Positions 953-16,315 of a stretch of 64,000 nt of DNA are shown in pieces. The position numbers and the translations under genes were made by a program. Location of the stretch: the sequence record OP292654.1; one strand, written 5' to 3'. Below the pieces are notes generated by a model. It did not search any database, had not been told where the DNA came from, and saw only the letters and a program-made list of their open reading frames with translations. Positions within the stretch are counted from its first letter, which is position 1. The number at the start of each line of letters is the position of its first letter.

Positions 953-993
953 CCAGCGAAATGGGCGACCCTAGAGGGTGGCAAGATCCGTCC
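953..993 (+). ncRNA. Two-hairpin promoter-proximal element, copy 1
   Basis: CCA-GCGAAA-TGG then ACCC-TAGA-GGGT-GGCAAGATCCGTCC; repeated about 10 times in 0.9-16.3 kb. Confidence 0.6.
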
Positions 994-1013
994 GTAGTTT
1001 TTTATATGAATTT

Positions 1014-1059
1014 TGGACGCAATTCCCCACCCCCTGGGGTTCCCGCTTTCTCGCGTCTA
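1014..1059 (-). ncRNA. Two-hairpin element, inverted copy convergent with copy 1
   Basis: Minus strand reads TAGACGCGAGAAAGCGGGAACCCCAGGGGGTGGGGAATTGCGTCCA. Confidence 0.5.
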
Positions 1060-1066
1060 TGTAGTT

Positions 1067-1095
1067 ATTATGCCAGTACTGAGATCATAACGCAA
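1067..1095 (-). promoter_or_regulatory. Minus-strand sigma70 promoter
   Basis: TTGCGT-N17-CATAAT on the minus strand. Confidence 0.65.
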
Positions 1096-1439
1096 GGACT
1101 TTCGACAATCTTTACAAAACTTTTTAGCCCTTCTATATACGCAATATAAAGGCCGTACAGCGTACCAGGAGATTATGTGTCTTAGTACTGTTAAAGGGCT
1201 TAGAACGCGATACAGGAAACAGTAAGTGCATATAAGGAAGGAAAACGAGGATCGAAAGTATTTTAAAGAAAAAGTGAAATAGTCCTTGCATGGTTCATTG
1301 GTTATGATAGTATAGCTCCAACGACAAGAAACACCGCTCTTTAAAAACCTGGCATTCATTACTGAAACAAACATTTACGCGGTTTCGCGAAAAAGATTTG
1401 AGAAAGTACTTGACTGCTGGATTGAGTAGTGTAGAATGT

Positions 1440-1600
1440 CAATTATCGAAAGGCGGTCAGGTTCGCCGGATGATAGGAAACGGAAACAGGGCTAGAATAG
1501 ATAGTACTGTTTCAGCGTATGACCGGATAAGGCAACGTAGCGTTATAAAGGCTAACTAACTGTTAGCGTCCTATCTACCGCCTGGAGATAAACGAAAAAA
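1440..1600 (+). ncRNA. Candidate structured RNA or leader
   Basis: Nested pairings AGGCGGT 1451-57/ACCGCCT 1577-83 and GATAGGA 1472-78/TCCTATC 1569-75; hairpin GCTAAC/GTTAGC 1551-67; downstream of a TTGACT...TAGAAT promoter (~1410-1437). Confidence 0.4.
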
Positions 1601-1725
1601 AAGTTTCTCGAAAGTTGAAAAAGTCCTTGACCGAAAGAAACGAAATGTAGTAAGATGTAATCACTGAGACGCAAGAGCGAATCAGACAAACAAATTAATC
1701 AATCACTTTTAAGAAGGTACATATC

Positions 1726-2427
1726 ATGGCTAAATCTAACAAAACTGTTGTTGCTTCTTCTGTTGAAACTGCTGTTAAAGCTCCGAAAGTAACCCTGAAC
1801 AGCATCGTCCTGGCGACTACTCCGGCTCTGCCAGCCCTGCCGGAAGGTCAGACCGAGCACACTGCCGAAGTACTGGCACAATTTGAAAGCGACGTGACCG
1901 CGTTTGTCAATACTCAGGCTCAGGCACTGGCTGATTACCTGGTAGACAAGTCGGACAGCGTAGAAATCATTTCCCGCCTGCTGGGTGCGACTGTGACGCT
2001 GATCCCTGCGGTACTGGAACGCGAAGCGGAAAACATCGCTAAACGCAAAGCAGAACGCGAAGCGAACCGCAACGCCGCGAAAGCTCAGCGTGAAGCCGAA
2101 GCCGCTGCCGCTCAAAAGGCACTGGAAGAAGAGAAGAAAGCAATGCTGAAACTTCTGCTCGATTCAGGCATGGATCTGACGATGGCGAAAGCAGCGGTTG
2201 AAGCTGGTGCGAAAGCGAAACTGAAAGCGGCTGCGGCTCCGGTTGTGTCTTACGAGCGTGTGACCGTTGAATATAACGGCAAGCAGTACGAAATGCCGGT
2301 AAAAGGTAACATGGGTAACGAACTGAAAGCAATTCTCGCAGAAAGCAAGCTCGACCGCGACGACTTTATCAAGCAATACAAAGTCGAAACCGAAAGCAAC
2401 GCTGAAACCGAAAACGCTGGCGAATAA
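1726..2427 (+). CDS. Ala/Lys-rich coiled-coil protein, possible H-NS/MvaT-like nucleoid protein
   Basis: Strong SD (AAGAAGG), highly expressed-type codon use, long charged helix, C-terminal ...LAESKLDRDDFI; function is inferred. Confidence 0.85.
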   Translation: MAKSNKTVVASSVETAVKAPKVTLNSIVLATTPALPALPEGQTEHTAEVLAQFESDVTAFVNTQAQALADYLVDKSDSVEIISRLLGATVTLIPAVLEREAENIAKRKAEREANRNAAKAQREAEAAAAQKALEEEKKAMLKLLLDSGMDLTMAKAAVEAGAKAKLKAAAAPVVSYERVTVEYNGKQYEMPVKGNMGNELKAILAESKLDRDDFIKQYKVETESNAETENAGE

Positions 2428-2442
2428 TCCCACGGCGTAAAA

Positions 2443-2465
2443 TAAGGGGGCTAAATGCCCCCTTA
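2443..2465 (+). terminator. Intrinsic terminator-like hairpin
   Basis: TAAGGGGGC-TAAAT-GCCCCCTTA directly after the ORF. Confidence 0.65.
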
Positions 2466-2470
2466 AGCAC

Positions 2471-2514
2471 TTCTAACAGTACTGTAATACAATCGGGTAA
2501 CAGTACTGTTAGAA
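2471..2514. repeat. Perfect 15-bp inverted repeat with AGTACT in each arm
   Basis: TTCTAACAGTACTGT 2471-85 / ACAGTACTGTTAGAA 2500-14. Confidence 0.9.
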
Positions 2515-2572
2515 ACGCTTAGAATCAATCCTAGAGCGTTTTAGATACCCTTTTAATTGAGAGTAAACGCCT

Positions 2573-2842
2573 ATGGAACTTAAAGCAATATCAGACCTGA
2601 TTGATCCACGTACCAGGATCGCAAAGACAATGACGGCAACGGGGCCGCGTACTACAGAGTTTAGCGGCTATCTTGCCTTTGTAGTTGGTGGCGTACTGGT
2701 ACAGCGTCGGATCTATGATATGCCTTACAATCATCAATTTGATTCGTGTATGTATATCATTCACAAGAAAGTAAACTATGCCGTAAATCTTCCATGTAAG
2801 CCCATTAGCGGGGCTTTTAACGTAGAATCATTAAAGGCATAA
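2573..2842 (+). CDS. Hypothetical early protein
   Basis: ORF with GAGAG SD-like signal. Confidence 0.65.
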   Translation: MELKAISDLIDPRTRIAKTMTATGPRTTEFSGYLAFVVGGVLVQRRIYDMPYNHQFDSCMYIIHKKVNYAVNLPCKPISGAFNVESLKA

Positions 2843-2982
2843 GCTAACATACAAAACCCCTTAGAACTCGTCACATAGCGTTTTATAAGGGGTTTTATTT
2901 TTGCATCAAAAAAGTAAATTAGTACTTGCATAGTTCGTTCGAATATGGATAATAGAACTTATCGAAACGAGGAGAAACAAAA

Positions 2983-3645
2983 ATGAACTTATTTAAGTTA
3001 GAGCAATATAGAATGGTTCTGGAAGTACTGGAACAAATGAAAGATTGTTTAGACCGTGGCGAGACTTACACTAATGTTAAAGGCAAGCCGTTTAACGTTA
3101 CTCGTCAGTTTGGTATCTGCTGGCACGTATACGCCCATACGCCTAACCAAAAGATGACAGGGATCGGCACTGACTTTATGTGTGGTGCGTTCGCTGAAAT
3201 GGGGTTAGATTCTGCCTATCCGGTAGAGGGACAAAGTACTATCAATCGCGATCATATGCGTATTGCGTTCACTGCTCAGCGTAACTTGTACGACGACGAC
3301 ACGATCCACGGTGCGAACCGGATCAAGCTGGTGGACCGTCTGATTCAGTACTACCGCGAAAAGATGGAAACGCCTGTTAGTGAAACAATGTACCAGCATT
3401 ACTATAACCTTGCGTTATCAGAAATGAAATGGCGTGATACAGCTAACGAGGCTGTTTGGGATGTTCTGGATTTTGAGAACAATCAGATCTGGCCTAGCCT
3501 GGCCGCCTTGATTGTACAGGAAGATCCAACCCTGGGGGAAGTACTGGAAAACTCTGATATTAACTACCCGGACGATCTGACACTGGAAAACATTGTCACG
3601 ACTAACTTACAGGAACGGATTCAGGAAGCGTTAGAAAAGTTATAA
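2983..3645 (+). CDS. Hypothetical early protein
   Basis: GAGGAG SD, upstream promoter. Confidence 0.85.
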   Translation: MNLFKLEQYRMVLEVLEQMKDCLDRGETYTNVKGKPFNVTRQFGICWHVYAHTPNQKMTGIGTDFMCGAFAEMGLDSAYPVEGQSTINRDHMRIAFTAQRNLYDDDTIHGANRIKLVDRLIQYYREKMETPVSETMYQHYYNLALSEMKWRDTANEAVWDVLDFENNQIWPSLAALIVQEDPTLGEVLENSDINYPDDLTLENIVTTNLQERIQEALEKL

Positions 3646-3656
3646 TCTTTACAATT

Positions 3657-3692
3657 TAGGGCTTGACCGTTTCAAGCCCTATATAGTACTAT
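3657..3692 (+). promoter_or_regulatory. Terminator hairpin containing the -35 of the next promoter
   Basis: TAGGGCTTGA-CCGTT-TCAAGCCCTA followed by TAGTACTAT. Confidence 0.7.
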
Positions 3693-3724
3693 GTCAGTAC
3701 ACCAACAAACGGAGCAAAACGAAA

Positions 3725-4066
3725 ATGATGAGATTAAGCGAACTGAAAGGCGTACTTTTCCAACTGGAACAAATCGCACACAAAAGAGGGAACATTGATC
3801 CGATTGTGGAATTGTTCAACGATGATCTTTACGTTGAAGTAGATCTCCAGGCAATCGCAGATGATCCAGAAGGGCAATTGTTGCGTAACGGTACTATTCA
3901 CCTACCAACAAAAGAAATCGTGCGTCGTGGTTTCGCGATAACCTACGGCACGGATCGCGGCGAGGACTCAATCATAATTGACGCCGAAAGTAAAGCCCAG
4001 GCCGAACAATTATTCAAGAAACATTTTAGTTCATACGAATTAAAATTAGTCATCGAAGCAATGTAA
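3725..4066 (+). CDS. Hypothetical early protein
   Basis: GGAG SD, own promoter. Confidence 0.8.
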   Translation: MMRLSELKGVLFQLEQIAHKRGNIDPIVELFNDDLYVEVDLQAIADDPEGQLLRNGTIHLPTKEIVRRGFAITYGTDRGEDSIIIDAESKAQAEQLFKKHFSSYELKLVIEAM

Positions 4067-4080
4067 ATCTTTACAAAACA

Positions 4081-4120
4081 GGGGTTGACTTCGGTTAGCC
4101 CCTTATGTTAAAGTACTATC
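4081..4120 (+). promoter_or_regulatory. Terminator/promoter fusion with cUUCGg hairpin
   Basis: GGGGTTGAC-TTCG-GTTAGCCCC; TTGACT at 4085. Confidence 0.75.
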
Positions 4121-4123
4121 AAT

Positions 4124-4165
4124 CCAGCGAAATGGTCTAACCCACAAGGGTGGGAAGATCCGTCC
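4124..4165 (+). ncRNA. Two-hairpin element, copy 2
   Basis: CCA-GCGAAA-TGG; ACCC-ACAA-GGGT; GGGAAGATCCGTCC. Confidence 0.6.
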
Positions 4166-4185
4166 AGTGATTTTTATATGAATTT

Positions 4186-4230
4186 TAGACAGATCTTCCC
4201 ACTCTCTAGAGTCTCCCGTTTCGCCGGTAT
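4186..4230 (-). ncRNA. Two-hairpin element, inverted copy convergent with copy 2
   Basis: Minus strand: CCG-GCGAAA-CGG and ACTC-TAGA-GAGT (compensatory changes); promoter TTGCTT-N17-CATAAT at 4237-4265. Confidence 0.6.
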
Positions 4231-4329
4231 GTGGTAATTATGCCAGTACTGAAAAAGAAAAGCAAGGAAAAAGAATCGAAAAAAAGTAATTAAATCGCTT
4301 GATCGGTTCTGTGGTTATGATAATATAGC

Positions 4330-4645
4330 TACATCGAAACGACACGGCGAGCCGCCAAAGGAGTTAAGATTTGAACCATCAGGCTGATATCCTGGTGGCA
4401 GTACGTAGAACCCTAAGACGTATAGCGAACCAATAAGACTATACCAGGAATCACAAAGCGAAAGCACATCTATAAGGTGATTGTGATTAGTACTGAAAGA
4501 TTATCAGGTACTTAATAAATTAAACAAACTACTTATTAAATAGCCGCGTAGGTGTGAAGTTCTAATATCGCATTCGTGCCGTGTTAGACGTTCCGAAAGG
4601 AAACCGATTCACCAATTAATGCCCCTCATGCCAGGGGCATTTTTT
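4330..4645 (+). ncRNA. Candidate ~300-nt structured RNA with its own promoter and terminator
   Basis: ACACGGC 4342-48/GCCGTGT 4578-84; TCCTGGT/ACCAGGA; AATCACAA/TTGTGATT; TTCC-GAAA-GGAA 4591-4602; terminator 4618-4645. Confidence 0.55.
4618..4645 (+). terminator. Intrinsic terminator
   Basis: AATGCCCCT/AGGGGCATT plus T-run. Confidence 0.85.
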
Positions 4646-4745
4646 GTTTTAAAATAAAGTAAATTAAAACGAGATAGTACTTGATCATAAATGTGTATGC
4701 TGTATAATTACCTATATCGAAACAGCACTATTAAGGATTTAAAAA

Positions 4746-5129
4746 ATGACCAGAACTGTTTTTCGTACTGTTAAGTTAGAAGATGTTAAGGGCGTTACTA
4801 TCACGGCGAATCGTTGGTTTAATCGTGGCGATGGTAACACATATCATTCTGTTTATTTGGGTGTGTTGATTCCCGTTGAACGTGCTAACGAGTTAGGAGC
4901 TAATTTATATAAGCGTCCTATTTCAGATGGTACTGTATGGATCGACCTGGCACAAGAAACATTCGAATATGGTTACGAGCGTTGTTATGATCAAACGGCA
5001 TTAGCATTGTTTGATGCGGGTTGTTCTGATACAATCGCAGACACTGGAACCCTATCGCGTTTTTGTCGTGAATCAGGGATCGAATTTGCGGAAAATGTTC
5101 ACGATGTTAAACGAAAAAAAGATTTATAA
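4746..5129 (+). CDS. Hypothetical early protein
   Basis: AAGGA SD, upstream promoter with TATAAT. Confidence 0.85.
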   Translation: MTRTVFRTVKLEDVKGVTITANRWFNRGDGNTYHSVYLGVLIPVERANELGANLYKRPISDGTVWIDLAQETFEYGYERCYDQTALALFDAGCSDTIADTGTLSRFCRESGIEFAENVHDVKRKKDL

Positions 5130-5206
5130 TTGATTGTCAAAAGTACTTGCTTATTACGTGCGAGTACTTTACAATGAGTTATCACTTAAGCGAACGAGGT
5201 TTTAAA

Positions 5207-5392
5207 ATGAAAACTGTTAGACCTACCTGGGGTAATGTGGAATGGCCTTTGTTCACTCAGGAGAACGCGAACAAATGCCCTACGGCTCGTTATGTTGGCG
5301 GCATTTCTCGTTGGCTGTGCGAGTGCCGTTTGCCTCGCGAATGTAACGGAATTATTGCGGTAAACGCAATCAAGGCGGTGAAGCATGGCTAA
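5207..5392 (+). CDS. Small hypothetical protein
   Basis: GAGG SD before ATG 5207 (start moved from 5147). Confidence 0.65.
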   Translation: MKTVRPTWGNVEWPLFTQENANKCPTARYVGGISRWLCECRLPRECNGIIAVNAIKAVKHG

Positions 5393-5567
5393 ACAATACG
5401 CAATCGGGTTAGGTAGCAAGGCTTATCCTATTCCGGCAAAGTCAGAACGTGGGGCAAAGAATGCCGCTACTCGCCGTGCTGCTGATAGTGTAGGATATAT
5501 CAGTACTATCAGCAATATGTACATTGAAACACATACGTTTCATAATGGACGCTGGAAACCTGTATAA
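5385..5567 (+). CDS. Small basic hypothetical protein
   Basis: Overlaps the preceding stop; GGTG SD. Confidence 0.7.
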   Translation: MAKQYAIGLGSKAYPIPAKSERGAKNAATRRAADSVGYISTISNMYIETHTFHNGRWKPV

Positions 5568-5623
5568 TCTTTACAAAAGAGGGGTTGACTATTCAATCCC
5601 TTTTATAGTATTATGTATTCACT

Positions 5624-5665
5624 CCAGCGAAATGGACTAACCCTATAGGGTGGCTAAATGCGTCC
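5624..5665 (+). ncRNA. Two-hairpin element, copy 3
   Basis: TCCA-GCGAAA-TGGA; ACCC-TATA-GGGT; follows hairpin-promoter at 5581. Confidence 0.6.
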
Positions 5666-5758
5666 TGAAAATATTATAAATTAAATCGCAAATAGTACTT
5701 GCTTTGTTTGTTGGTTATGGTAATATCTTTATATCAGATACTCTTTGAGGTTAAGAAA

Positions 5759-6340
5759 ATGCGTTACTGGAAAAACTTTGTTAATAGCTTACACAATAGA
5801 ACCAATGATGAAATTATTTCTATGTGTAAATCTGCTGGTCTACAACAATTAGGCAAAGTTAACAAATGGTCTAGTAGAATTGTATTTGCTATAAATGATA
5901 ATTGGGTTATCAAAATCTGTCTATCCGAAATTGGGGTAGAACAAAATGAATGCGAATACCGGTTATGGGATTCTTTAAGTATCGGATGCGAACATTATAA
6001 AAAGTACTTTGCTAAACTTTATCCTGAAATGTGTGATACTGTTGAATATCGTTTTATTGTTATGCAACGTTTAACTAATAGTACTGAAACAAAGAAAGGG
6101 TTAATAGCAGCCGCGAAACGCTATAGCCCAAATACAAAAAAATTCCGTAATGCTATAAAAGATATTGATTTACATTCTGATTTGTGTAACGAGGGAGACA
6201 TTAAAGCATCTAATTTAGGTAAGGATAAAAACGGAAAAATCAAGCTGTTAGACTATGGCTGTAGTCGTAAAGTGGTAAATGCTTTTTATCGGGCACGGTG
6301 GAATAATGACACTGCGAAAGTAATAAAAACTACAATTTAA
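5759..6340 (+). CDS. Hanks-type/PKL-fold protein kinase-like protein
   Basis: Motifs in order: SSRIVF, WVIKI, alphaC E, DIKASNLG, KLLDYG; start moved to ATG 5759 after GAGG. Confidence 0.75.
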   Translation: MRYWKNFVNSLHNRTNDEIISMCKSAGLQQLGKVNKWSSRIVFAINDNWVIKICLSEIGVEQNECEYRLWDSLSIGCEHYKKYFAKLYPEMCDTVEYRFIVMQRLTNSTETKKGLIAAAKRYSPNTKKFRNAIKDIDLHSDLCNEGDIKASNLGKDKNGKIKLLDYGCSRKVVNAFYRARWNNDTAKVIKTTI

Positions 6341-6401
6341 ACTTGCGTTATATGTCAGATTCAAGTACTATGTAATCACACTAAACGATAGGAGCTACAC
6401 A

Positions 6402-6779
6402 ATGAATAAGATCTTCGCAATCCAGGCTGACATTGTAGGTGCACTTTCCCATATCGAAATGATGGGGAAAACAAAAGCTGAATGTCAAAAAGAAGTTGAC
6501 AGATTGAATAAACGCATCAGTACTGAATTGTCATTAGTACGGGAACGTTTCGCCTGTACTACCCTGATTACTTCTATGTTGTGCGTTGTGAATCAGAATA
6601 AAATGTGCCTCGCGTATGAATACAAGGGCAAGCTTTACAGTACTGCTCACAATGTTAAGGGAATGGCAAATACTAACGTTTTACATGATCTCGGTTTACC
6701 TATGGCTGAATGGGATAAGATGCCAAAATTCAGCGTCTGGATCGCATCAGGTAACGTTTACGATAAGTCGGACGTGTAA
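6402..6779 (+). CDS. Hypothetical early protein
   Basis: AGGAG SD. Confidence 0.8.
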   Translation: MNKIFAIQADIVGALSHIEMMGKTKAECQKEVDRLNKRISTELSLVRERFACTTLITSMLCVVNQNKMCLAYEYKGKLYSTAHNVKGMANTNVLHDLGLPMAEWDKMPKFSVWIASGNVYDKSDV

Positions 6780-7068
6780 CCTATAGGGGGCATATTGCCC
6801 CCTCTTAAAACGTGTTGTAGGGGCTTTATGGATCTATTCTATAGTACTAAACGATTAGTTGTAATTTTTACTTGTAGTTCTGATTCGATTTGTTGTATAA
6901 TCTATCGCAAGGGGCAACGGGTAGATAATTGGACTCAGTTACAATCCTATACAATGAAACGGCCAGGCTTTAAACGTCTGGATGACAAAGGCAAAGTGTT
7001 AGCGTGTCGCATGGTACTAAAAGCAATGCGTAATCGTATGACACAATCACTTAAGGTAACGTTAGAAA

Positions 7069-7377
7069 ATGTCTGATAATATTGATAACTTCGCGAAAGC
7101 ATTTACTTATACAACTACTTTCCAGGATGCAACTGGTAATAGAACAGTTGAATGTGATAATGTGTGCCTGGTTAGTCATGGGTACAATCCAGAAGAGATC
7201 TTTACTTCCTGGTTACATGCTGTTAATGTTCGTTATCAGTACGGAAAAGTAATCACCGTACAGGAAGCATTAGCTTTACCTGCTGGTAAAAATCACTTAT
7301 CACTTAAAGGTAAAGTCGATCTTATTGGTGATACTGCTCAATACATCACACATACCACGGCGATCCGTGATTTGTAA
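7069..7377 (+). CDS. Hypothetical protein
   Basis: ORF with AAGG SD. Confidence 0.75.
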   Translation: MSDNIDNFAKAFTYTTTFQDATGNRTVECDNVCLVSHGYNPEEIFTSWLHAVNVRYQYGKVITVQEALALPAGKNHLSLKGKVDLIGDTAQYITHTTAIRDL

Positions 7378-7433
7378 AGTACTAAAAATAGGGGTTGACT
7401 TCGGTTAGCCCTTTGTAGTATTATGTAATCACT

Positions 7434-7475
7434 CCAGCGAAATGGACTAACCCTATAGGGTGGCAAGATCCGTCC
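7434..7475 (+). ncRNA. Two-hairpin element, copy 4 (consensus)
   Basis: CCAGCGAAATGGACTAACCCTATAGGGTGGCAAGATCCGTCC after hairpin-promoter at 7391. Confidence 0.6.
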
Positions 7476-7650
7476 AAAAAAAAGTTATAAATTAAAATGA
7501 AAATAGTACTTGCTTTGTTTGTTCAATGTGGTAATATGTATCACATGGAAGGGCAAGTGAGGATAAAGAAATGAGTCGTAAAGTAGAGTTTCTTTTGTTT
7601 ATCTTTATTGTTATAATGCTATCTGTCGAATTTAATTAAGAGGATATATC

Positions 7651-7881
7651 ATGGCACAGTTTAAAGCAACAGTAACCACTACCGGAATTGGCACAGCGGG
7701 AACTGATACCGTTTTAGTACTGACAGAATATCATAATCTGGAAGACGCAAGCCGATTAATTCAGTTATGGGCAAATGATCAGTATCATGGTAATATTGCT
7801 GTTTGTACTGAAAAACTGAATAACAGCAATGAAGTGTTTGTGTCTGATTTATCAGGTTATCACAAAGTTATTTTGTTGTAA
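7651..7881 (+). CDS. Hypothetical protein
   Basis: GAGG SD. Confidence 0.8.
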   Translation: MAQFKATVTTTGIGTAGTDTVLVLTEYHNLEDASRLIQLWANDQYHGNIAVCTEKLNNSNEVFVSDLSGYHKVILL

Positions 7882-7969
7882 ATCCATTAATAGTACTTGC
7901 TTTCCTTCTGCGAGTACTATATAATGAACTTACTGAAACGCAATAACCATTAATTAAGAGGAAGTTATC

Positions 7970-8173: not shown

Positions 8174-8175
8174 CA

Positions 8176-8367: not shown

Positions 8368-8424
8368 AACATAAAGTACTGGTGAAATATCCAGTACTGT
8401 TTTTATGTACAGCATTATAATTTT

Positions 8425-8470
8425 TAGACGCATCTTGCCACCCTCTGGGGTTCCCGCGTTCTCGCGTCTA
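8425..8470 (-). ncRNA. Two-hairpin element, stand-alone minus-strand copy
   Basis: TAGACGC...ACCC-CAGA-GGGT-GGCAAGAT-GCGTCTA on the minus strand; no downstream ORF on that strand. Confidence 0.6.
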
Positions 8471-8477
8471 TGTAGTA

Positions 8478-8506
8478 ATTATAGGGGAATCTGGTTCTGT
8501 TGTCAA
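8478..8506 (-). promoter_or_regulatory. Perfect-consensus sigma70 promoter, antisense to the gene cassette
   Basis: TTGACA-N17-TATAAT on the minus strand. Confidence 0.85.
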
Positions 8507-8783: not shown

Positions 8784-8792
8784 GGTAACACT

Positions 8793-9662: not shown

Positions 9663-9682
9663 CATAACAGTACTGAAAAGTC

Positions 9683-9706
9683 AAGCCCCTTAATTGGGGC
9701 TTTTTC
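9683..9706 (+). terminator. Intrinsic terminator
   Basis: AAGCCCC-TTAATT-GGGGCTT plus T-run. Confidence 0.85.
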
Positions 9707-9806
9707 TTTTGCATTTTCTTAAAATAACTCTTGCTTTTTATATTCGTTAGTAGTACTATTATCACATCGAAGCGGTTCATGGTGAATCACACGGAGGGTA
9801 GCAAAT

Positions 9807-10007
9807 ATGTTTATCGGTCCATCAATTCCTTTTCCGCTTATGGCTGCTCGTGAAAGTCGCGAAAACCGTGCTAAGTACTTGAAAGGTGCTAGACAGTGGG
9901 AACATAACCACGAATTCCGCAAGATGGATCTTGATCTTGCTCAGTTGTTTAAAGCCCACGAAAAAGCGTGGATGGTAACATATAACCAGGAGATCGCAAA
10001 TGCTTAA
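9807..10007 (+). CDS. Small hypothetical protein
   Basis: GGAGG SD. Confidence 0.75.
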   Translation: MFIGPSIPFPLMAARESRENRAKYLKGARQWEHNHEFRKMDLDLAQLFKAHEKAWMVTYNQEIANA

Positions 10008-10198
10008 GTTTATACTTATCGCCGTTGTGGTATTCTTTGCTTTACGTGGTTGTACTGTCACGTATTCAAATAATAACTGTACCCTGATAATGGGTCAATC
10101 TGGCAATAGCTATACTTGCGAGTAAACATTATCAAAAGTACTTGCTTTATGTATGCGAGTACTTTATAATGATTACATCAAGTGAACGGAGAATTGAA

Positions 10199-10552
10199 AT
10201 GAAAAGAATCGCAGTAGTAGCAATCGCAGTACTGGCATTTTCCGCTGGCATTCATACAGGCCGTTGGGTGGAAGCTAAAAAGAATCCACCTGTTGTTAAC
10301 GTAACAGTAAATCCGGTCAGTACTGTTGAACCGATTTACAATTGTACTATCAAGACGCATGATGATTCTCGTTATATTTCAAACGAAGAATTTACATTAA
10401 CTGCCACACAAATCATTAATATGGAACGTGGGGATATTGTAGGGCATAATCATGTTGTTACCGTTCCTTTATGGAATACTGATAAGAATGAAATGATGGG
10501 GCTTATCAGTACTGAAAATTCATCATTCAATTGTGTATTGGAAAAGAAATAA
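10199..10552 (+). CDS. Secreted or membrane-anchored hypothetical protein
   Basis: MKRIAVVAIAVLAFSA signal-like N-terminus; GGAG SD (start moved). Confidence 0.8.
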   Translation: MKRIAVVAIAVLAFSAGIHTGRWVEAKKNPPVVNVTVNPVSTVEPIYNCTIKTHDDSRYISNEEFTLTATQIINMERGDIVGHNHVVTVPLWNTDKNEMMGLISTENSSFNCVLEKK

Positions 10553-10944
10553 TGGGTCAAAATGTTCATGGGTTGCCTTATGGCGTAGCTAATGCCCTTA
10601 ACGAATTAGCAAAGAATGTTAAGACTGGTCCAGGTGCTGCTAGAAAATACAGAACAGAAGATGATTATTATAACGAATTTGTTCGTCGTAATGGTAATCA
10701 ATCTGGTTTTCCAGTACCGAAAGATGCATTAAGAAAAAGACTGTACAAACGAGCGAAGGAACGTTATAATAAAGACCATCCTCGCGAGTACAAACTAAAG
10801 ACCGTTAATGATATGGTCATGTTTCTGGCGAATAATGGTCAAATCACGGCTTTATGGCAGCACGTAGGTTTAGACATTGAACGGCACGAAATGGCAAAAA
10901 AAGCTATTGACATTTATCAAACAGGTAAGGGGTTACTTAAATGA
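10552..10944 (+). CDS. Basic hypothetical protein
   Basis: TAATG coupling to the previous gene. Confidence 0.75.
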   Translation: MGQNVHGLPYGVANALNELAKNVKTGPGAARKYRTEDDYYNEFVRRNGNQSGFPVPKDALRKRLYKRAKERYNKDHPREYKLKTVNDMVMFLANNGQITALWQHVGLDIERHEMAKKAIDIYQTGKGLLK

Positions 10945-11113
10945 AATATCGTAGCACATACAAGCCAAAACGCAATAGTTATCTGACGGCTGTTACTGGT
11001 TATTATGGTCGGGCACGAAAATAATACTTGCGTTATTCATTCAGTACTGTTATAGTACTTACATCCAGACGGGAAACAAGTTTCCCTGTAAACCACAAAG
11101 AAGGAAAGAACCA

Positions 11114-11482
11114 ATGACTATTCAGACTCACTACTTCGCTACCAGAACTCTTGCTCGTGCTAACGTTGAAGTACTGAACGGCAAGATCAAAGACTTCGGC
11201 AAAGACGCACCAACTGGTGAACGTTGGGCGGTGCTGGTGGAAGTACCAGAACAGCATTCCGAGATTGAGATGCATCAATCAATGGATACTGCGGTTAACA
11301 GTACTATTGACTTCCTGAAGCGTGAACGCCTGATGATGGATGCCAGTACTATCACTAATCAGCGTCCTGGTATCATCGGCGAACAAACTCTGAAAACGCC
11401 AAATAACAAGCCGTGCCGTGTCTCCTGGCGTCGCAGTATGACGGCGGTACGTCTGGCTAAACACTTACAGAAAGTCTCTTAA
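11114..11482 (+). CDS. Hypothetical protein
   Basis: AAGGA SD, upstream promoter. Confidence 0.8.
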   Translation: MTIQTHYFATRTLARANVEVLNGKIKDFGKDAPTGERWAVLVEVPEQHSEIEMHQSMDTAVNSTIDFLKRERLMMDASTITNQRPGIIGEQTLKTPNNKPCRVSWRRSMTAVRLAKHLQKVS

Positions 11483-11532
11483 AATGCGATACAGGGGGTT
11501 ATGTGCCCCCTGTTTATTCCTGGGGTGTATCA

Positions 11533-11775
11533 ATGAAAAAGATAATGGTAGATGATACACAATTACGAATACATTTTAAAGCTCAGACTAAAGTACTTGA
11601 CAAGGCTATTCGTGTTGTGCGAGAATACAAAGGCGGTAATGTAAGACCGCGAAAGCTGAATTGTGGATTGTTCAGTGTGATCGAAGTATCACGCAATGAA
11701 CGTATTGTGATTGACAATGGCAAACTTAACCTAATGACTCATGAACAATATAACAATTTCATCGCTAGGCGTTGA
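11533..11775 (+). CDS. ParE/RelE-like toxin-fold small protein
   Basis: KA..V..Y..G.V.PR.L....S.I.V....R......LM(T/S)HE.YN pattern typical of small ParE-like proteins. Confidence 0.55.
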   Translation: MKKIMVDDTQLRIHFKAQTKVLDKAIRVVREYKGGNVRPRKLNCGLFSVIEVSRNERIVIDNGKLNLMTHEQYNNFIARR

Positions 11776-11822
11776 CAGAATCCCCTAAATATGATTATAA
11801 TAATCGTATAGGGGATTTTATT

Positions 11823-12290
11823 ATGCCAAACAATTTTAAGAACAAGAACGGGGCGTCCATCGCTGGTCATAGTCAAAAATGGGCTAATGATAATCGCCGT
11901 TCAAACAGTCATGATGCTGGTCAAGGTGATCGCGGTTCACGTAACCAGGGAACAGGACTACAAGGCAAGCTAAACACAATGCCTTCTCAGGGTACAGACA
12001 CTTCCCGCATGAATCCAGAAGAAAAGTTAAAGTACTTTAAATCGTTAGGACTTATGCCAGGCCGTGAACCTACACCAGAACCATCTATTAAAGATCTGCC
12101 TAATGTCTTGCGTAAAATGTTCGAAGGTGAACCAACGTACATTAAAGATATTACTACCGCATTAAAGGCCGTGCCACCAGCACAATATCAAGCCGCTGTC
12201 AAGGCAGTATTTCACGCCGCACACAACACAGAATCAGATGATGTTTATGATAAGTATGAAGCTATCATGAACGCAATACAATCAGTTTAA
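11823..12290 (+). CDS. Hypothetical protein with low-complexity N-terminus
   Basis: GGGGA SD; promoter TTGACA 11772...TATAAT. Confidence 0.8.
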   Translation: MPNNFKNKNGASIAGHSQKWANDNRRSNSHDAGQGDRGSRNQGTGLQGKLNTMPSQGTDTSRMNPEEKLKYFKSLGLMPGREPTPEPSIKDLPNVLRKMFEGEPTYIKDITTALKAVPPAQYQAAVKAVFHAAHNTESDDVYDKYEAIMNAIQSV

Positions 12291-12295
12291 AAAAT

Positions 12296-12335
12296 AAGGG
12301 TTGACTTCGGTTAACCCTTTTGTTATTCTATCAGT
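12296..12335 (+). promoter_or_regulatory. Terminator/promoter fusion
   Basis: AAGGGTTGAC-TTCG-GTTAACCCTT, T-run, TATTCT. Confidence 0.75.
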
Positions 12336-12359
12336 ACTGAAAACAACGGAGCAATTGAA

Positions 12360-12710
12360 ATGAGAAAACTTCTTCTGTTAGGTCTGCTGGTGGCTTCATA
12401 CGCGAACGCTGGTACTCAGGTTTACACTTGCCCAAGTTACACACTGTACCAGGGAACGGGGAACGGCAATTATCAGAAAGTAGATAACTCTGCCGCTGAA
12501 CACATTATTCAAATCACTGTAACTGAACCAGTGATTGAAGTACAGGTGAAAGATACTGATATGGAAGTAGTTCAATTCTGGAAAGATTACAGTATCTATC
12601 GTAATGATACTGGCACAATCGAACAGGCCGGATCTATGTTTACCATGAAAACCGCTGTACCACAAAACGGCGTTTATCTTCCTGTCAAGATCGTTTATCA
12701 TTGTAATTAA
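12360..12710 (+). CDS. Exported (signal peptide) protein, possible periplasmic or superinfection factor
   Basis: MRKLLLLGLLVASYANA signal peptide with ANA cleavage site. Confidence 0.8.
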   Translation: MRKLLLLGLLVASYANAGTQVYTCPSYTLYQGTGNGNYQKVDNSAAEHIIQITVTEPVIEVQVKDTDMEVVQFWKDYSIYRNDTGTIEQAGSMFTMKTAVPQNGVYLPVKIVYHCN

Positions 12711-12784
12711 TTTCATTCCAGGGGTTGACATATGTTCGCCCCTGATCAATAATATCAGTACTGAAAACAAACGAGGGTACTACC

Positions 12785-13006
12785 ATGATTGAAGATATGT
12801 TGAGAGAGTTGTTTGCTGAACCAACTGAAGCAGACCTGAAAGCAAATGAAGTTATCGGGCAGATCTGCGAGTTCAATCAGTTTAACCTGATGGGCGTCCT
12901 CCTTCTGAATAACTTCCTGGGTGGATTCGACCGCCAGATCATCGCCGATAAGGTTAGCCCACTGGCAACGCCTTTCGTACTGGCAGATCATAAACTGATG
13001 CATTAA
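12785..13006 (+). CDS. Small hypothetical protein
   Basis: GAGGG SD, own promoter at 12721. Confidence 0.75.
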   Translation: MIEDMLRELFAEPTEADLKANEVIGQICEFNQFNLMGVLLLNNFLGGFDRQIIADKVSPLATPFVLADHKLMH

Positions 13007-13057
13007 GAAAATAAAGGGTTGACTTCGGTTAGCCCTTTTTGCTATACTGTATTCAAT

Positions 13058-13100
13058 CCAGCGAAATGGACTAACCCTATAGGGTGGCAAGTTGCGTCCA
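13058..13100 (+). ncRNA. Two-hairpin element, copy 6
   Basis: TCCA-GCGAAA-TGGA; ACCC-TATA-GGGT; follows hairpin-promoter at 13013. Confidence 0.6.
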
Positions 13101-13251
13101 ATGGATTTTAGTACTAGAAAGTACTGTATAAATGAACAGGTAATTATTTTTAAATTAAAACGTGAATAGTACTTGCGTTATTCATCCAGTACTGTATAAT
13201 CTTTTACATGGATTAGGGAATGGCCTTAATCATTTAAGCGAGAATATCAAA

Positions 13252-13827
13252 ATGAAATTTAACGAACTGAACGCAGAACAGCAAGCTAAAGCAATTGAAA
13301 AGAACAGAGATATTAACGTTGATTTCCAGGAATGGAATGATTGGGTAAAAGAAGAACATCATTCTAAACTGGAAGCTGTTGGCTTCGACGGAGTAGAATC
13401 AGCGTATTCTGGCTTTTGGTCACAAGGCGACGGTGCAAGCTTCACGGCGACTTCCCTTGACATTGAAAAGTTTTTACGTTCACAAAAACGCTGGACGCAT
13501 TATCGCCCACTTCATGAGATGATCCGTATCAATGAAATATGGGCTAAAGTGGTTCGTACCTCGCATATGTACTGCCACGAAAACACTACTCAGGCAGAGT
13601 TACACGGCGAGCATTACATTGATTTAACTCCACGTCAAGAAACTTTGTATGAAGAACTTGAAAAGGAAATTGATACTTATATCACGCAAGCTGGCCAGGT
13701 CTACTATCGTGCTCTTAATGAAGCATACGACGATCTGACAAGTGATGAACAGGTTAAACAAAGTATCATCGCAAATGATATGGACTTCGAAGAAGATCCC
13801 CGCGAACCTGGCGTAACGTATCTCTAA
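13252..13827 (+). CDS. Conserved hypothetical phage protein with SGFWSQGDGASF motif
   Basis: Start moved to ATG 13252; motif recalled from phage/plasmid hypothetical proteins. Confidence 0.8.
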   Translation: MKFNELNAEQQAKAIEKNRDINVDFQEWNDWVKEEHHSKLEAVGFDGVESAYSGFWSQGDGASFTATSLDIEKFLRSQKRWTHYRPLHEMIRINEIWAKVVRTSHMYCHENTTQAELHGEHYIDLTPRQETLYEELEKEIDTYITQAGQVYYRALNEAYDDLTSDEQVKQSIIANDMDFEEDPREPGVTYL

Positions 13828-14244
13828 AAATAATTAATAACAGGGATTGACTAGTTCAATCCCTTTTGCTATTCTATCAGTACTGAAACAGAGGATAGCA
13901 ACATGAAAAAGAAATATGTAGTTGAGTACACAGAAGAAAGTTTAGCACACGTAGAAGCTAAACATATGGAAGATATTTTAGGCCTGGCTATTAGTACAGT
14001 ACTTTCCTTTATCCTGGTATTCTGCTAATGCGTGAACTTAAATCATTCAGAAACGGCAAAGTTAGATTGTATTCCAATCGCGGAGTACTCACACTTAACC
14101 ACGCAGATATTAATAACTGTACTATGACATTTGTCAAGCCCTGGTATGCTCTTTATTATTACAGCCAGGCAGTTACAAAAGAAATGAAATCATTTGCATA
14201 AAGGGCTTGACACAATAAGCCCTTATTGATATACTGTTATCAAT

Positions 14245-14287
14245 CAGGCGAAACTGACTAACCCTATAGGGTGGCGTAGTGTATTCA
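14245..14287 (+). ncRNA. Two-hairpin element, copy 7 (3' end degenerate)
   Basis: TCAG-GCGAAA-CTGA; ACCC-TATA-GGGT. Confidence 0.55.
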
Positions 14288-14409
14288 AAATCTATTAGTA
14301 CTGGATACATGTACAGTAATTATTTTTAAATTAAAACGTGAATAGTACTTGCATTCAAACGTCCATAGTATATAATGAAGTTATTGAAACAGCACTGGAG
14401 CAAAACAAA

Positions 14410-14649
14410 ATGGCTAAATCAGGAATTGAATTTAAAGTAAGAGTCTGGTCTGATACCGCCGCACGTCCGTTCGATGTTGTAGCACTTGACCACGACAACA
14501 ACAAGCAACACTATCAGCCAGGCGTCGAATTCAGTACTGAAAAAGGTGCGGAAGATCACGCAAACACCTTGACAAACGTACTGAAATCTGAACCTAGCCG
14601 TTCTAATTTCATTCGTGATTACTGGCCTGTTGATGGCGGTATCGAGTAA
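14410..14649 (+). CDS. Hypothetical protein
   Basis: GGAG SD before ATG 14410. Confidence 0.8.
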   Translation: MAKSGIEFKVRVWSDTAARPFDVVALDHDNNKQHYQPGVEFSTEKGAEDHANTLTNVLKSEPSRSNFIRDYWPVDGGIE

Positions 14650-14725
14650 TAAAAATCAAAATAGTACTGGACAACTTGAATAGAATCCAGTACTATTACC
14701 TTACACCAAACGAGAGGAACGAATC

Positions 14726-15568
14726 ATGATTAAAATGTATCAGGGTATCAACGGCAAAGCTATCAAAGAAAATCGCCCACTGACCAGAAGTGAACTCCTG
14801 GAAGTAGTACCGTCAGTATTCCAGTACGATGCACACGAATCACGTTCAGCACGTTTCGCACCAGTGCCAACTATCGACGTGATTGATCGTCTCGCTCAGG
14901 AAAACTATTTCCCGATGTTCGCAACTCAGGCACGTGTACGCGACGAATCAAAACGCGAATTCACTAAGCATATGTTGCGTTTCCGTCAACCTGGACAGAA
15001 AGAAGGTGAAGCAAACGAAATCATCCTTCTTAATGCGAACGATGGCACAAGTGCTTACCAGTTGATTAGCGGGCAATTCCGTTTCGTATGTGCTAATGGT
15101 CTGGTAATGGGTAATACCCAAAGCAATACTAAGATCTATCACAAAGGCCAGAACATCATGGATGACGTGATCGAAGGTGTATTCGAGGTTGTTAAAGACT
15201 TCGACCTTATCGACCGTTACAAAGGCGAAATGTCACGCATCCAGTTAGACGACAAACAACGCAAGTCATTTGCCGTTGCTGGTTACTTCGCTAAAGAAGG
15301 TTTACCAAAACCAGGCGAAGCTATCAACTTCCTGTACAGTCCTGAACAGTTGTTGAATACTCGCAACGTTAACAGTACTGATCGCAACAGCAACAGCCTG
15401 TACAGTACGTTTAACATCGTACAGCAAAACGTAATGGCTGGAGGGCAAACAGGCCGTAGCGATTCAGGCCGTCGCCGTACAACTCGCGGCGTGACTAACA
15501 TCGACAAGAATTTAGACTTTAACTCTAAATTGTGGCAGTTGGCAACTTCATTAGTAGATGCCGCATAA
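14726..15568 (+). CDS. DUF932/DUF945 family protein (YafZ/YubP-like)
   Basis: RSARF..VPTIDV..RL; FTKHMLRFR; IILLNANDGTSAYQL..G.FRFVCANGLV. Confidence 0.85.
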   Translation: MIKMYQGINGKAIKENRPLTRSELLEVVPSVFQYDAHESRSARFAPVPTIDVIDRLAQENYFPMFATQARVRDESKREFTKHMLRFRQPGQKEGEANEIILLNANDGTSAYQLISGQFRFVCANGLVMGNTQSNTKIYHKGQNIMDDVIEGVFEVVKDFDLIDRYKGEMSRIQLDDKQRKSFAVAGYFAKEGLPKPGEAINFLYSPEQLLNTRNVNSTDRNSNSLYSTFNIVQQNVMAGGQTGRSDSGRRRTTRGVTNIDKNLDFNSKLWQLATSLVDAA

Positions 15569-15645
15569 AGTACTAATAAGGGGTTGACAAGTATCAGCCC
15601 CTTTGCTATTCTATCAGTACTGAAACAACAACAGGAAGTAAACGA

Positions 15646-15954
15646 ATGTCTAGATTAACCTTTTTTGTACGTCATGACCTGGTAGAGTATAACGGTCAAG
15701 AAGCCTCAAGCTTTTATATCGTCGGTCAAGATACAGAAACAGGCCGTCGCATTGCCCTGAAAACTTCTCACGAAATGACTCAGGAACTCCACGAACAACA
15801 GGCAGTTCGCGAGAAACAGAATCGCCGTATCCTGGCAATTGAGAAACATCTCGCCGCTGGTGGAAGCCTGAACCCTGATCACTGGAATGAGATTGAACCG
15901 GTGTACGGTTCAGAAGCCTGGCAGCTTGCGGATCGTATGGGCTTGTTAGATTAA
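15646..15954 (+). CDS. Hypothetical protein
   Basis: AGGA SD, hairpin-promoter at 15578. Confidence 0.8.
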   Translation: MSRLTFFVRHDLVEYNGQEASSFYIVGQDTETGRRIALKTSHEMTQELHEQQAVREKQNRRILAIEKHLAAGGSLNPDHWNEIEPVYGSEAWQLADRMGLLD

Positions 15955-16025
15955 TCAAATAAGGGGTTGACAACAGTTAGCCCCTGTCATATACTATCAG
16001 TACTGAAACAACGGAGAGTAATAGA

Positions 16026-16223
16026 ATGGCTACTGAAAGAATCAAGCAACTCGCAAACAACGTCCTCGCACGTAAGCACCTCGGCATTAATGAGGCAATG
16101 GAATCAGTACTCGGCGAGTATACCAAAGAAAACGCCAACGTGTACAATGATGTTTTCGATGAAGTCCAGAACATTCTGCATCCACACGGCCAGGGCGAAG
16201 ACGCAGTGCATTGCGATTTTTAA
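16026..16223 (+). CDS. Small acidic hypothetical protein
   Basis: GGAG SD, hairpin-promoter at 15961. Confidence 0.8.
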   Translation: MATERIKQLANNVLARKHLGINEAMESVLGEYTKENANVYNDVFDEVQNILHPHGQGEDAVHCDF

Positions 16224-16273
16224 TTCAGAAAGGGGTTGACTTCGGTCAGCCCTTTTGTTATAGTACTATCAAT

Positions 16274-16315
16274 GCGGCGAAACGCACTAACCCTCTAGGG
16301 TGGCAAGATCCGTCC
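16274..16315 (+). ncRNA. Two-hairpin element, copy 8
   Basis: TGCG-GCGAAA-CGCA; ACCC-TCTA-GGGT; GGCAAGATCCGTCC. Confidence 0.6.

Follow-up and report, generated by a model that had tools for sequence, protein, structure and literature searches.

Phage HK022 carries directly behind its early promoters the nascent two-stem-loop RNAs putL and putR. The putL structure has its first base at nucleotide 3 of the transcript and works without a protein (PMC9378689). The put RNAs number two per genome, belong to lambdoid phages, and are described as ~70-73 nt long with long bulged stems and a triplex. Lambda-type nut sites (boxA plus boxB, with N and the Nus factors) likewise follow early promoters and include a short hairpin whose purine-rich, five-base loop is conserved. 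Multicopy decoy or sponge RNAs, such as the CsrB/RsmZ-type sponges, the RNA anti-CRISPRs, and the pseudo-ToxI of Pectobacterium phage phiTE, are short structured RNAs with conserved loops, present in many copies and at high level; those of phages are made early and neutralise a host protein. Decay that depends on the 5' end, through RNase E and RppH, is an established rule, and 5'-terminal stem-loops no more than 1-2 nt from the 5' end protect E. coli mRNAs such as ompA. In T4-type phages, the promoter-early stem-loop (PeSL) is a recombining terminator/promoter cassette that fuses strong sigma70-like early promoters to terminator stem-loops, is repeated between small early genes, and ends at the next gene's Shine-Dalgarno sequence and start codon (PMC2839356, PMC4122927).

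The window analysed here is the 64-kb left end of the jumbo phage Xanthomonas phage XbC2 (OP292654.1), whose published direct terminal repeat measures 17,581 bp. An earlier note had placed a family of promoter-proximal two-hairpin elements at 953, 4124, 5624, 7434, 13058, 14245, and 16274 on the plus strand and at 1014, 4186, and 8425 on the minus strand, and we found all seven plus-strand and all three minus-strand copies there (Table 1). A covariance model, R1, recovered exactly these 10 copies from the 64 kb (55.9-75.5 bits, E values from 7e-15 to 4e-21), with the next-best match in the window at E = 0.43, and it also found the family in related phages. All 10 lie within the direct terminal repeat, which is the early region, a dosage of 10 copies in 17.6 kb; the element was absent from the other 96 kb examined outside the repeat. 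The module is restricted to this repeat, the location of the early genes. Compared by description with put, the element is shorter (~48 nt) and has stems of 3-5 bp; each terminal repeat holds about 10 copies, and one-third of the copies are antisense. It differs from a nut site in its six-base loop, its copy number, and its orientation pattern, and no N-like protein was found among the 30 terminal-repeat ORFs. Most sense copies are driven by promoters of the PeSL kind; however, the description of PeSL holds no transcribed two-hairpin module, so we regard the element as a unit additional to it. Unlike decoy RNAs, the copies are dispersed rather than tandem, and Rfam returned no CRISPR repeat, ToxI, or Csr/Rsm family match on them. 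The likeness to ompA-type stabilisers is the 5'-terminal hairpin; the conserved loop, second hairpin, and alternative helix are features that stabilisers do not need.

Table 1. Element copies, their promoters, and neighbouring features in the window
Feature	Position	Strand	Description
Copy 1	948..995	+	Sense; convergent pair 1; 63.4 bits
Copy 1 promoter	914..943	+	sigma70-like; 10/12 matches
Copy 2	1013..1060	-	Leftward; convergent pair 1; hairpin 1 loop GAGAAA; 55.9 bits
Copy 2 promoter	1067..1096	-	-35 within motif AGTCCTTGC; -10 CATAAT; read from sequence
Copy 3	4119..4167	+	Sense; convergent pair 2; 65.1 bits
Copy 3 promoter	4085..4114	+	-35 inside terminator-like hairpin; PeSL-like terminator/promoter fusion
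Copy 4	4185..4232	-	Antisense; convergent pair 2; hairpin 2 covaried to ACTC/GAGT; 61.9 bits
Copy 4 promoter	4238..4267	-	Read from sequence
Copy 5	5619..5667	+	Sense, solitary; 68.3 bits
Copy 5 promoter	5585..5614	+	
A/T-rich spacer and second promoter-like block	5668..5726	+	Directly after copy 5; -35 in motif AGTACTTGC
Copy 6	7429..7477	+	Sense, solitary; 75.5 bits
Copy 6 promoter	7395..7424	+	Terminator/promoter fusion
A/T-rich spacer and second promoter-like block	7479..7537	+	After copy 6
Terminator hairpin	8375..8398	.	Bidirectional, T-runs on both sides; starts 25 nt after copy 7
Copy 7	8424..8471	-	Antisense, solitary; 59.1 bits
Copy 7 promoter	8478..8506	-	Perfect TTGACA-17-TATAAT; 12/12 matches
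Copy 8	13053..13101	+	Sense, solitary; 75.0 bits
Copy 8 promoter	13019..13048	+	Terminator/promoter fusion
A/T-rich spacer and second promoter-like block	13142..13200	+	After copy 8
Copy 9	14240..14288	+	Sense, solitary; hairpin 1 TCAG/CTGA; 60.8 bits
Copy 9 promoter	14207..14235	+	Terminator/promoter fusion
A/T-rich spacer and second promoter-like block	14318..14376	+	After copy 9
Copy 10	16269..16317	+	Sense, solitary; hairpin 1 TGCG/CGCA; 71.1 bits
Copy 10 promoter	16236..16264	+	Terminator/promoter fusion
A/T-rich spacer and second promoter-like block	16318..16376	+	After copy 10

Comparison of the copies shows that the module forms two hairpins at the RNA level. Hairpin 1 combines a freely varying 3-5-bp stem with a conserved purine-rich loop. 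Its stems in the window are those listed earlier (TCCA/TGGA three times, CCA/TGG twice, TCAG/CTGA, TGCG/CGCA, and CCG/CGG). The loop GCGAAA proposed for it holds in 8 of the 10 copies, but the variant reported as GCGAGA is really GAGAAA at 1014 (CGC-GAGAAA-GCG) and GAGAAC at 8425 (CGC-GAGAAC-GCG). Hairpin 2 pairs a nearly invariant ACCC/GGGT stem around a free loop; it reads ACCC-N4-GGGT in nine copies and ACTC/GAGT in 4186(-), with the loops TATA, TAGA, ACAA, TCTA, CAGA, and also CAGG. The claimed common tail of 14 nt is exact in three copies and within three mismatches in eight; the window holds 10 tail matches against 1.99 expected, two of them at chance level outside the region. The comparison likewise shows an alternative partner for the 3' half of hairpin 2, the tail. 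The resulting helix 3 excludes hairpin 2, with which it has four bases in common, and at copy 9 its pairing is kept through G-U and U-A pairs despite a divergent tail.

The claim of strong covariation also survives in a larger alignment. Among the ten window copies, 93.8% of cells are paired versus 80.0% in shuffles, and the covariation score is 0.400 versus 0.121 when shuffled and at most 0.047 when partners are slid; for 83 distinct copies the score is 0.456 versus 0.137 and at most 0.053. Across those 83, double-sided changes at the three inner pairs of hairpin 1 number 24, 32, and 31, against 0, 0, and 2 breaks, and the Kaldavass ortholog of copy 6 carries two compensatory base-pair changes in this hairpin. 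Hairpin 2 is 99.7% paired (15 G-U pairs, five double changes), with a loop of 3 or 4 nt across the family, and many copies have it as a perfect 12-bp palindrome. Each of the five helix 3 pairs is kept in 79-83 of the 83. In the 3' strand of this helix, transitions number 127 and transversions 6; the neighbouring columns have 121 and 188. A G-U pair has no counterpart on the complementary strand, which marks the structure as one of the sense RNA alone. Folded one sequence at a time, the copies reach no significant energy (z-scores +0.2 to -1.5), so the case for structure is a comparative and not a thermodynamic one.

As proposed earlier, the elements start just after sigma70 promoters, and a sigma70-like -35/-10 pair precedes each of the 10 copies. 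PeSL-like terminator/promoter fusions drive six of the seven sense copies in the window, copy 1 being the exception. An A fills alignment column 3 in all 83 distinct copies, and the -10 hexamer ends 7 nt upstream of this invariant A in 57 of 87; the lock of the 5' end to the promoter is seen with both promoter architectures. The element starts 1-2 nt past the invariant A, and in every copy just 1-2 unpaired nucleotides stand 5' of hairpin 1. Some early promoters have no element, making two promoter tiers.

In each related Rak2-like jumbo phage examined, from four named genera with phages of E. coli and Klebsiella among them, the covariance model finds 6-12 copies. A search of 2.9 million viral contigs with the core pattern gave matches confined to contigs of 345-378 kb, and the matching phage records, 69 in number, are all Rak2-like jumbo phages. 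Copies precede orthologous genes in different genera and are retained at orthologous sites between genera with merely ~70% DNA identity; the element is conserved at such sites across these phages in either orientation. Core pattern, records, and orthologous placement together argue for clade-wide selection. The family was called undescribed, and this stands: Rfam 15 gave no match by gathering threshold or by E-value, and the element is absent from the genome papers of CBB and XbC2.

In eight genomes, 26 of 70 copies are antisense to genes, with no plausible ORF found downstream of the antisense copies. Downstream of each of eight solitary antisense copies, at 25-27 nt, lies a terminator-like hairpin; these copies come from four named genera and the XbC2/Kaldavass lineage, and the hairpin sequences differ. 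Copy 7, with its own promoter and terminator, forms an ORF-less unit of ~100 nt. Between the element and the gene, 26 of 44 sense copies have the -35 motif of a second promoter, in most cases at +25 to +30. The early region, described before as packed with intrinsic terminators, is enriched for terminator-like sites (30 versus 13.6 +/- 3.8 expected). In the window, five of the seven sense copies have no terminator between them and the next gene.

Our tentative preference is that the element RNA itself may be the selected product, a high-copy ligand or decoy. The copies would then possibly be self-contained cassettes, each a strong sigma70-type early promoter with a ~48-nt structured RNA module from the first base of the transcript. 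The earlier proposal of a put/nut-like or an sRNA/sponge system was right about a structured, promoter-locked family; the evidence leaves its two halves undecided, with the weight moved away from a purely cis role. We favour the RNA as product because about one-third of the copies face away from genes and the solitary antisense copies run into a nearby terminator. The second promoters after sense copies also count for a product over the downstream gene, as does the dosage of 10 copies per repeat and 6-12 in related genomes for a ligand; antisense orientation, terminators after eight copies, second promoters, and the lack of an N-like protein together count against a purely cis role. Such a ligand would be made within the first minutes of infection. 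Its conserved loop, together with the invariant segment of hairpin 2 and helix 3, would bind a partner (RNA polymerase, a phage protein, or a host protein that binds RNA or acts in defence), and the RNA would titrate or mark this partner. Sense copies would put an identical tag on mRNA 5' ends. With only 1-2 unpaired 5' nucleotides, the hairpin should also shield these RNAs from RNase E/RppH decay, and alternation between hairpin 2 and helix 3 may uncover or mask the surface that the partner binds. Several observations count against a ligand. Pfam, PHROGs, and PDB sequence searches found no RNA-binding protein among the terminal-repeat ORFs, the short hairpins are only marginally stable alone, and the five sense copies with no terminator ahead of the next gene are not predicted to yield a discrete short RNA. 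The leftward copy of pair 1 could really be an mRNA leader, given the operon that it faces in Kaldavass and GAP32, and the fixed terminator spacing could reflect genome compaction rather than function.

A close rival, possible but rather unlikely in our judgment, is a put-like processive antiterminator, in which the nascent two-hairpin RNA binds its own polymerase and makes that polymerase resistant to the early region's many intrinsic terminators. Transcripts from element promoters would then be long, and those from other promoters would end at the next terminator, so that promoters with and without the element make a sensible two-level design. Its position directly after early promoters in the terminator-rich region, its two stem-loops with conserved unpaired bases, and the protein-independent start of putL at nucleotide 3 (PMC9378689) all fit, as do the counterparts of copy 2 in Kaldavass and GAP32, which face an operon ~1.3 kb ahead across non-coding DNA. 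However, the solitary antisense copies aim at a terminator with no gene past it, and the promoters of most sense copies, six of the seven in the window, have their -35 within a terminator-like hairpin. In HK022 the effect persists for at least 10 kb, a range against which seven sense copies in 17 kb seem a large number. The stems are shorter than the long bulged ones of put, and the phage is not lambdoid. Antitermination gives way to a less probable account in which the module is a 5' stabiliser or processing leader: its terminal hairpin would block 5'-end-dependent decay of selected early RNAs, with the conserved parts a nuclease or chaperone site that sets lifetime. The protection established for ompA, the near absence of unpaired nucleotides before hairpin 1, and the presence of the module on mRNAs as well as short RNAs agree with this, but a plain stabiliser needs neither conserved loop, invariant hairpin 2 stem, nor helix 3, only some early promoters carry the element, and the antisense ORF-less copies could stabilise nothing but themselves.

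The bases shared by hairpin 2 and helix 3, both conserved, would also suit a factor-controlled attenuator, in which the downstream gene is gated by a factor on hairpins 1 and 2 that prevents helix 3, whose formation would otherwise signal termination or a pause. In the sense copies of both convergent pairs, helix 3 (976-993 in copy 1, 4148-4165 in copy 3) is followed by a T-run and scored terminator-like; the five other sense copies have an A-run there instead, the T-run is missing in most relatives too, and downstream genes have their own promoter past the element, which makes attenuation improbable. Least probable is that the RNA has no function, the likeness stemming from recombining mobile PeSL-type promoter/terminator cassettes or from hairpin 2 as a palindromic DNA operator. 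The PeSL-like fusions at six of seven sense-copy promoters, akin to the recombining cassette of T4-type phages (PMC2839356, PMC4122927), and the 12-bp palindrome speak for it. Against it, the hairpin 1 stem varies freely but nearly always on both sides together, the 3- or 4-nt loop alters half-site spacing, and copies persist at orthologous sites at ~70% DNA identity. The G-U pairs of hairpin 2 and helix 3 become C-A on the other strand, excluding duplex symmetry, and this strand-specific pairing already largely refutes a reading without RNA function.

Reading all ten sites bore out the coordinates, stems, loops and tail that an earlier note had described for a two-hairpin RNA element at the left end of the genome of Xanthomonas phage XbC2. 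The element comprises hairpin 1, with a variable stem and a purine-rich loop, hairpin 2, with an ACCC/GGGT stem and a free loop, and a 3′ tail. In two of the minus-strand copies, the loop does vary as had been claimed, with a slightly different parse of the hairpin: these copies have a CGC/GCG stem with a GAGAAA or GAGAAC loop. A search for the 14-nt tail allowing up to three mismatches gave 10 matches where 1.99 were expected, and eight of these were true copies. Standard pairs occupied 93.8% of the pair cells in the ten copies compared with 80.0% in shuffles. The covariation reported from the ten copies was likewise reproduced (score of 0.400 vs. 0.121 for shuffled sequences and at most 0.047 with slid partners), and RNAalifold independently yielded the same hairpins 1 and 2. 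Covariance model R1 retrieved exactly the ten copies from the 64 kb (55.9-75.5 bits; next match E = 0.43), with none at 17.6-64 kb, and a second covariance model found zero copies in the final 50 kb of the record (OP292654.1; 367,901 bp, genus Mimasvirus). Bases 1-17000 of the window match the start of the XbC2 record with 100% identity. XbC2 has a nonpermuted direct terminal repeat of the T5 type, 17,581 bp in length (PMC11273794), and thus all copies in the 114 kb examined fall within this repeat. In the related phage CBB, the annotation gives the homologous region as a terminal repeat of 22,456 bp. Every gene annotated within 20 kb of the left end of XbC2 is on the + strand, and these genes are small and of unknown function.

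We extended the structural analysis to a wide alignment of 83 distinct element sequences. The three inner pairs of hairpin 1 showed 24, 32, and 31 double-sided changes with 0, 0, and 2 breaks, and hairpin 2 was paired in 99.7% of cells, with 15 G-U pairs and 5 double-sided changes; sequence relatedness inflates such pairing and covariation statistics, and slid-partner controls, 8-20 times lower, are the fairer yardstick. The hairpin 2 stem is ACCC/GGGT in 63 of the 83 copies and GCCC/GGGT in 14, and as the hairpin 1 loop, 39 copies have GCGAAA and 20 have GAGAAA, with other A-rich sequences of 6-8 nt in E. coli and Klebsiella phages. At one orthologous site, XbC2 and its close relative, Erwinia phage Kaldavass, are separated by two compensatory pair changes in hairpin 1. 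Moreover, five positions of the tail can base-pair with the 3′ half of hairpin 2 and the G that follows it, forming an alternative helix 3, which is mutually exclusive with hairpin 2. Its pairs are kept in 79-83 of the 83 copies, and its tail positions carry 127 transitions vs. 6 transversions, compared with 121 vs. 188 in neighboring unpaired columns. G-U accounts for over half of the helix 3 pairs, so that this helix is possible only on the sense RNA and not on the opposite strand or in duplex DNA. The tail mostly does not follow single hairpin 2 covariation events, and hairpin 2, therefore, looks more strongly constrained than helix 3.

Several further candidate features were rejected. Single-sequence folds gave two other helices, one between the 3′ strand of hairpin 1 and the tail and one between the 5′ end and the tail in minus copies; by inspection, both fail where the hairpin 1 stem has covaried. 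Helix 3 does not qualify as a general terminator, since most copies have no T-run. Neither mini-ORFs nor start codons within the element are conserved, and relatives do not share a -10-like pause signal seen in the loop of hairpin 2. Some relatives carry a CsrA-type GGA motif in the helix 3 loop, but XbC2 lacks it.

We then considered where the element lies relative to its promoters. All 83 distinct copies have an A at alignment column 3, and in 57 of 87 copies the end of the -10 hexamer lies 7 nt upstream, which places the element at the extreme 5′ end of the predicted RNA, with hairpin 1 preceded by one or two unpaired bases. This spacing is kept across two different promoter architectures, one with the -35 within a terminator-like hairpin (a PeSL-like fusion) and the other with the -35 inside the motif AGT(A/C)CTTGC. 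PeSL terminator/promoter fusions have been described in T4-type phages (PMC2839356, PMC4122927). Such a cassette joins a terminator stem-loop to a sigma70-like early promoter and sits between small early genes, a description that fits these promoters but not the element. GC hairpins with a T-run that carry the -35 are listed with the other features of the region in the table; there are others of the same kind.

Features of the left end of the XbC2 genome (window positions)
Feature	Position	Strand	Remarks
Copy 7 unit, promoter	8478-8506	-	
Copy 7 unit, element	8424-8471	-	
Copy 7 unit, terminator	8375-8398		
GC hairpin + T-run carrying -35	4080-4106		TTGAC in 5′ arm
GC hairpin + T-run carrying -35	7390-7416		TTGAC in 5′ arm
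GC hairpin + T-run carrying -35	12296-12319		TTGAC in 5′ arm
GC hairpin + T-run carrying -35	13842-13864		TTGAC in 5′ arm
Iteron-like array	678-768		~16-nt units, forms of CTAGATGGCTA and TAGACGGCTA
Region without annotated gene	1061-1725		several promoter-like blocks and repeats
Region without annotated gene	4233-4745		several promoter-like blocks and repeats
SPFH/Band_7 protein	8793-9662		
27-aa ORF	10941-11024		very basic (8 K+R, zero acidic residues)
ParE-like toxin-domain protein	11533-11775		
YeeU-like antitoxin homolog	13252-13827		label from annotated homolog in Klebsiella phage Muenster
DUF932 protein	14726-15568		
Gene 5′ of long-stem terminator	16738-17148		
Long-stem terminator	17169-17191		10 pairs, longest stem of the region

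A survey of 70 copies in eight genomes revealed three genomic contexts. Solitary sense copies follow the order promoter, element, A/T-rich spacer of ~25-30 nt, second promoter-like block, and gene. In solitary antisense copies, promoter and element are followed after 25-27 nt by a terminator-like hairpin (eight of eight such copies in the survey), with no ORF downstream; these eight span four named genera and the XbC2/Kaldavass lineage, and their terminator-like hairpins differ in sequence. Copy 7, the solitary antisense copy of XbC2, and its counterparts in the four named genera have the make-up of stand-alone sRNA genes, each with a promoter of its own and an intrinsic terminator but no ORF; this is not the case for the five solitary sense copies. 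The third context is the convergent pair, with elements tail to tail ~20 nt apart, present twice in each Mimasvirus and Eneladusvirus genome examined. In Kaldavass and GAP32, the leftward copy of the first pair points at a leftward operon ~1.3 kb off; in XbC2, the corresponding copy would be directed at that operon by way of the right-hand repeat.

The covariance-model search of related phages that the earlier note had suggested found copies in each relative examined: 12 in Erwinia phage pEa_SNUABM_12, 10 in Kaldavass, 9 each in GAP32 and Yersinia phage fHe-Yen9-04, 7 each in CBB and E. coli phage vB_Ec-M-J, 6 in the first 14 kb of Klebsiella phage Muenster, and further copies in two 371-kb metagenomic contigs. 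The element is conserved from Erwinia phages through E. coli and Klebsiella phages, and some phages that bear it are recorded on E. coli K-12. BLAST with one convergent pair as the query matched only Rak2-like jumbo phages (69 phage records), and among 2.9 million viral contigs, the core pattern was present only in those of 345-378 kb. Copies precede orthologous genes in different genera (for example, homologs of the genes at 13252, 14410, and 16408), which indicates that they are old and kept in place and are not recent duplicates.

We compared the element with known RNAs. The earlier note had regarded it as undescribed, and in keeping with this, Rfam 15 at gathering thresholds gave zero matches in the 64 kb. 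In E-value mode over 17.5 kb, the only models matching the element were miRNA models, which hit the convergent pairs as palindromes and lay far below threshold; no put-like match was found in Rfam, and CRISPR-DR or ToxI models gave no element match at E up to 10. Unlike CRISPR-repeat or ToxI-type repeat arrays, the copies are not tandem. No tRNA or tmRNA was found in the window, and a search of 5,426 E. coli genomes with a copy from an E. coli phage gave no match that would point to host mimicry. Lambda-type nut sites comprise a boxB hairpin with a purine-rich loop and a linear boxA; the hairpin 1 loop has six bases and is purine rich. In the search for an N-like arginine-rich protein, no Pfam N family was found among 30 terminal-repeat ORFs of the 368-kb genome. 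The XbC2 and CBB genome papers make no mention of the element, and our literature search found no transcriptome for the Rak2-like jumbo phage clade.

The element is a strand-specific RNA structure that is 5′-terminal, high copy, restricted to the early terminal repeat, conserved in the clade, and independent of orientation. From this orientation independence, we infer that the RNA itself and not the downstream gene is the selected unit. Our preferred reading, held tentatively, is that the element is a high-copy ligand or tag: the early promoters would yield many element RNAs as the product under selection, and a partner would bind them early in infection. A search of terminal-repeat ORFs for this partner (Pfam, n = 30; PHROGs, n = 10; PDB sequence, n = 2) gave no RNA-binding candidate, and its matches were only Band_7, ParE-like, DUF932, a weak kinase match, and families of unknown function. 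Close behind the RNA-product reading, we rank a put-like antiterminator, which we consider somewhat doubtful. HK022 put confers termination resistance on RNA polymerase in cis, without a protein, via the beta′ zinc-binding domain. The placement of the element is put-like, after an early promoter with the invariant A 7 nt past the -10 and hairpin 1 starting 1-2 nt later; the published putL structure likewise starts at about nucleotide 3, with two stem-loops, and is protein independent (PMC9378689). However, the antisense units end at a terminator, the copy number is very high, and the element is much smaller and differently built: put is described as an RNA of ~70 nt whose two stem-loops are long and bulged, with a triplex in stem I (PMC9378689), whereas the element spans ~48 nt and its stems have 3-5 and 4 bp.

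The remaining explanations appear weaker. That the element is a plain 5′ stabilizer, for which its terminal position would be apt, is unlikely, and an attenuator that switches between hairpin 2 and helix 3 is more improbable still. A DNA-level or purely recombinational explanation is very hard to credit for a structure confined to the sense RNA. More speculatively, and somewhat less probably than the ligand or tag reading, the element might represent a new compact class of functional RNA that giant phages use in the first minutes of infection. It would then be either a nascent-RNA modifier of host RNA polymerase, smaller than any yet known and resupplied at many promoters, or a decoy RNA (~20 gene copies per virion genome) that disables a host RNA-binding or defense protein. 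If true, a small RNA decoy or a put-like polymerase modifier would each be a new example on a very short list. Rak2-like jumbo phages are among the largest phages of enterobacteria, and early gene control in them is, to our knowledge, essentially unstudied. An element that is multicopy, strongly covarying, and conserved, that occupies the exact 5′ terminus of immediate-early transcripts, and that is restricted to the terminal repeat with the early genes bears the marks of a central early function. The covariance model and ~80 sequences are sufficient for a new RNA family entry.

The early repeat showed additional features. Its Band_7, ParE-like, YeeU-like, and DUF932 genes are reminiscent of the anti-defense genes of first-entering regions. 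The 27-aa ORF, with no homolog found in relatives, may be spurious or encode a small basic peptide. The iteron-like array lies in the leftmost part of the terminal repeat, where 1.7 kb is free of genes, and may be a set of protein-binding sites for packaging or replication. The two regions without annotated genes, stretches of 600-700 nt that follow each convergent pair, may encode further noncoding RNAs. The recorded host of XbC2 is Xanthomonas vesicatoria, yet all its relatives infect Enterobacterales; across the matched third of the first 17 kb, Kaldavass is 87% identical to XbC2. Xanthomonas is a high-G+C genus and XbC2 has a G+C content of ~38-40%, so that, together with the hosts of its relatives, the assignment looks odd. 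The palindrome AGTACT occurs 96 times in the first 17.6 kb, where base composition predicts ~5, and another 161 times over the following 46 kb; the sites fall in -35 regions, promoter spacers, and -10 boxes as well as at transcript starts and in terminator stems. The long-stem terminator lies near the end of the terminal repeat.
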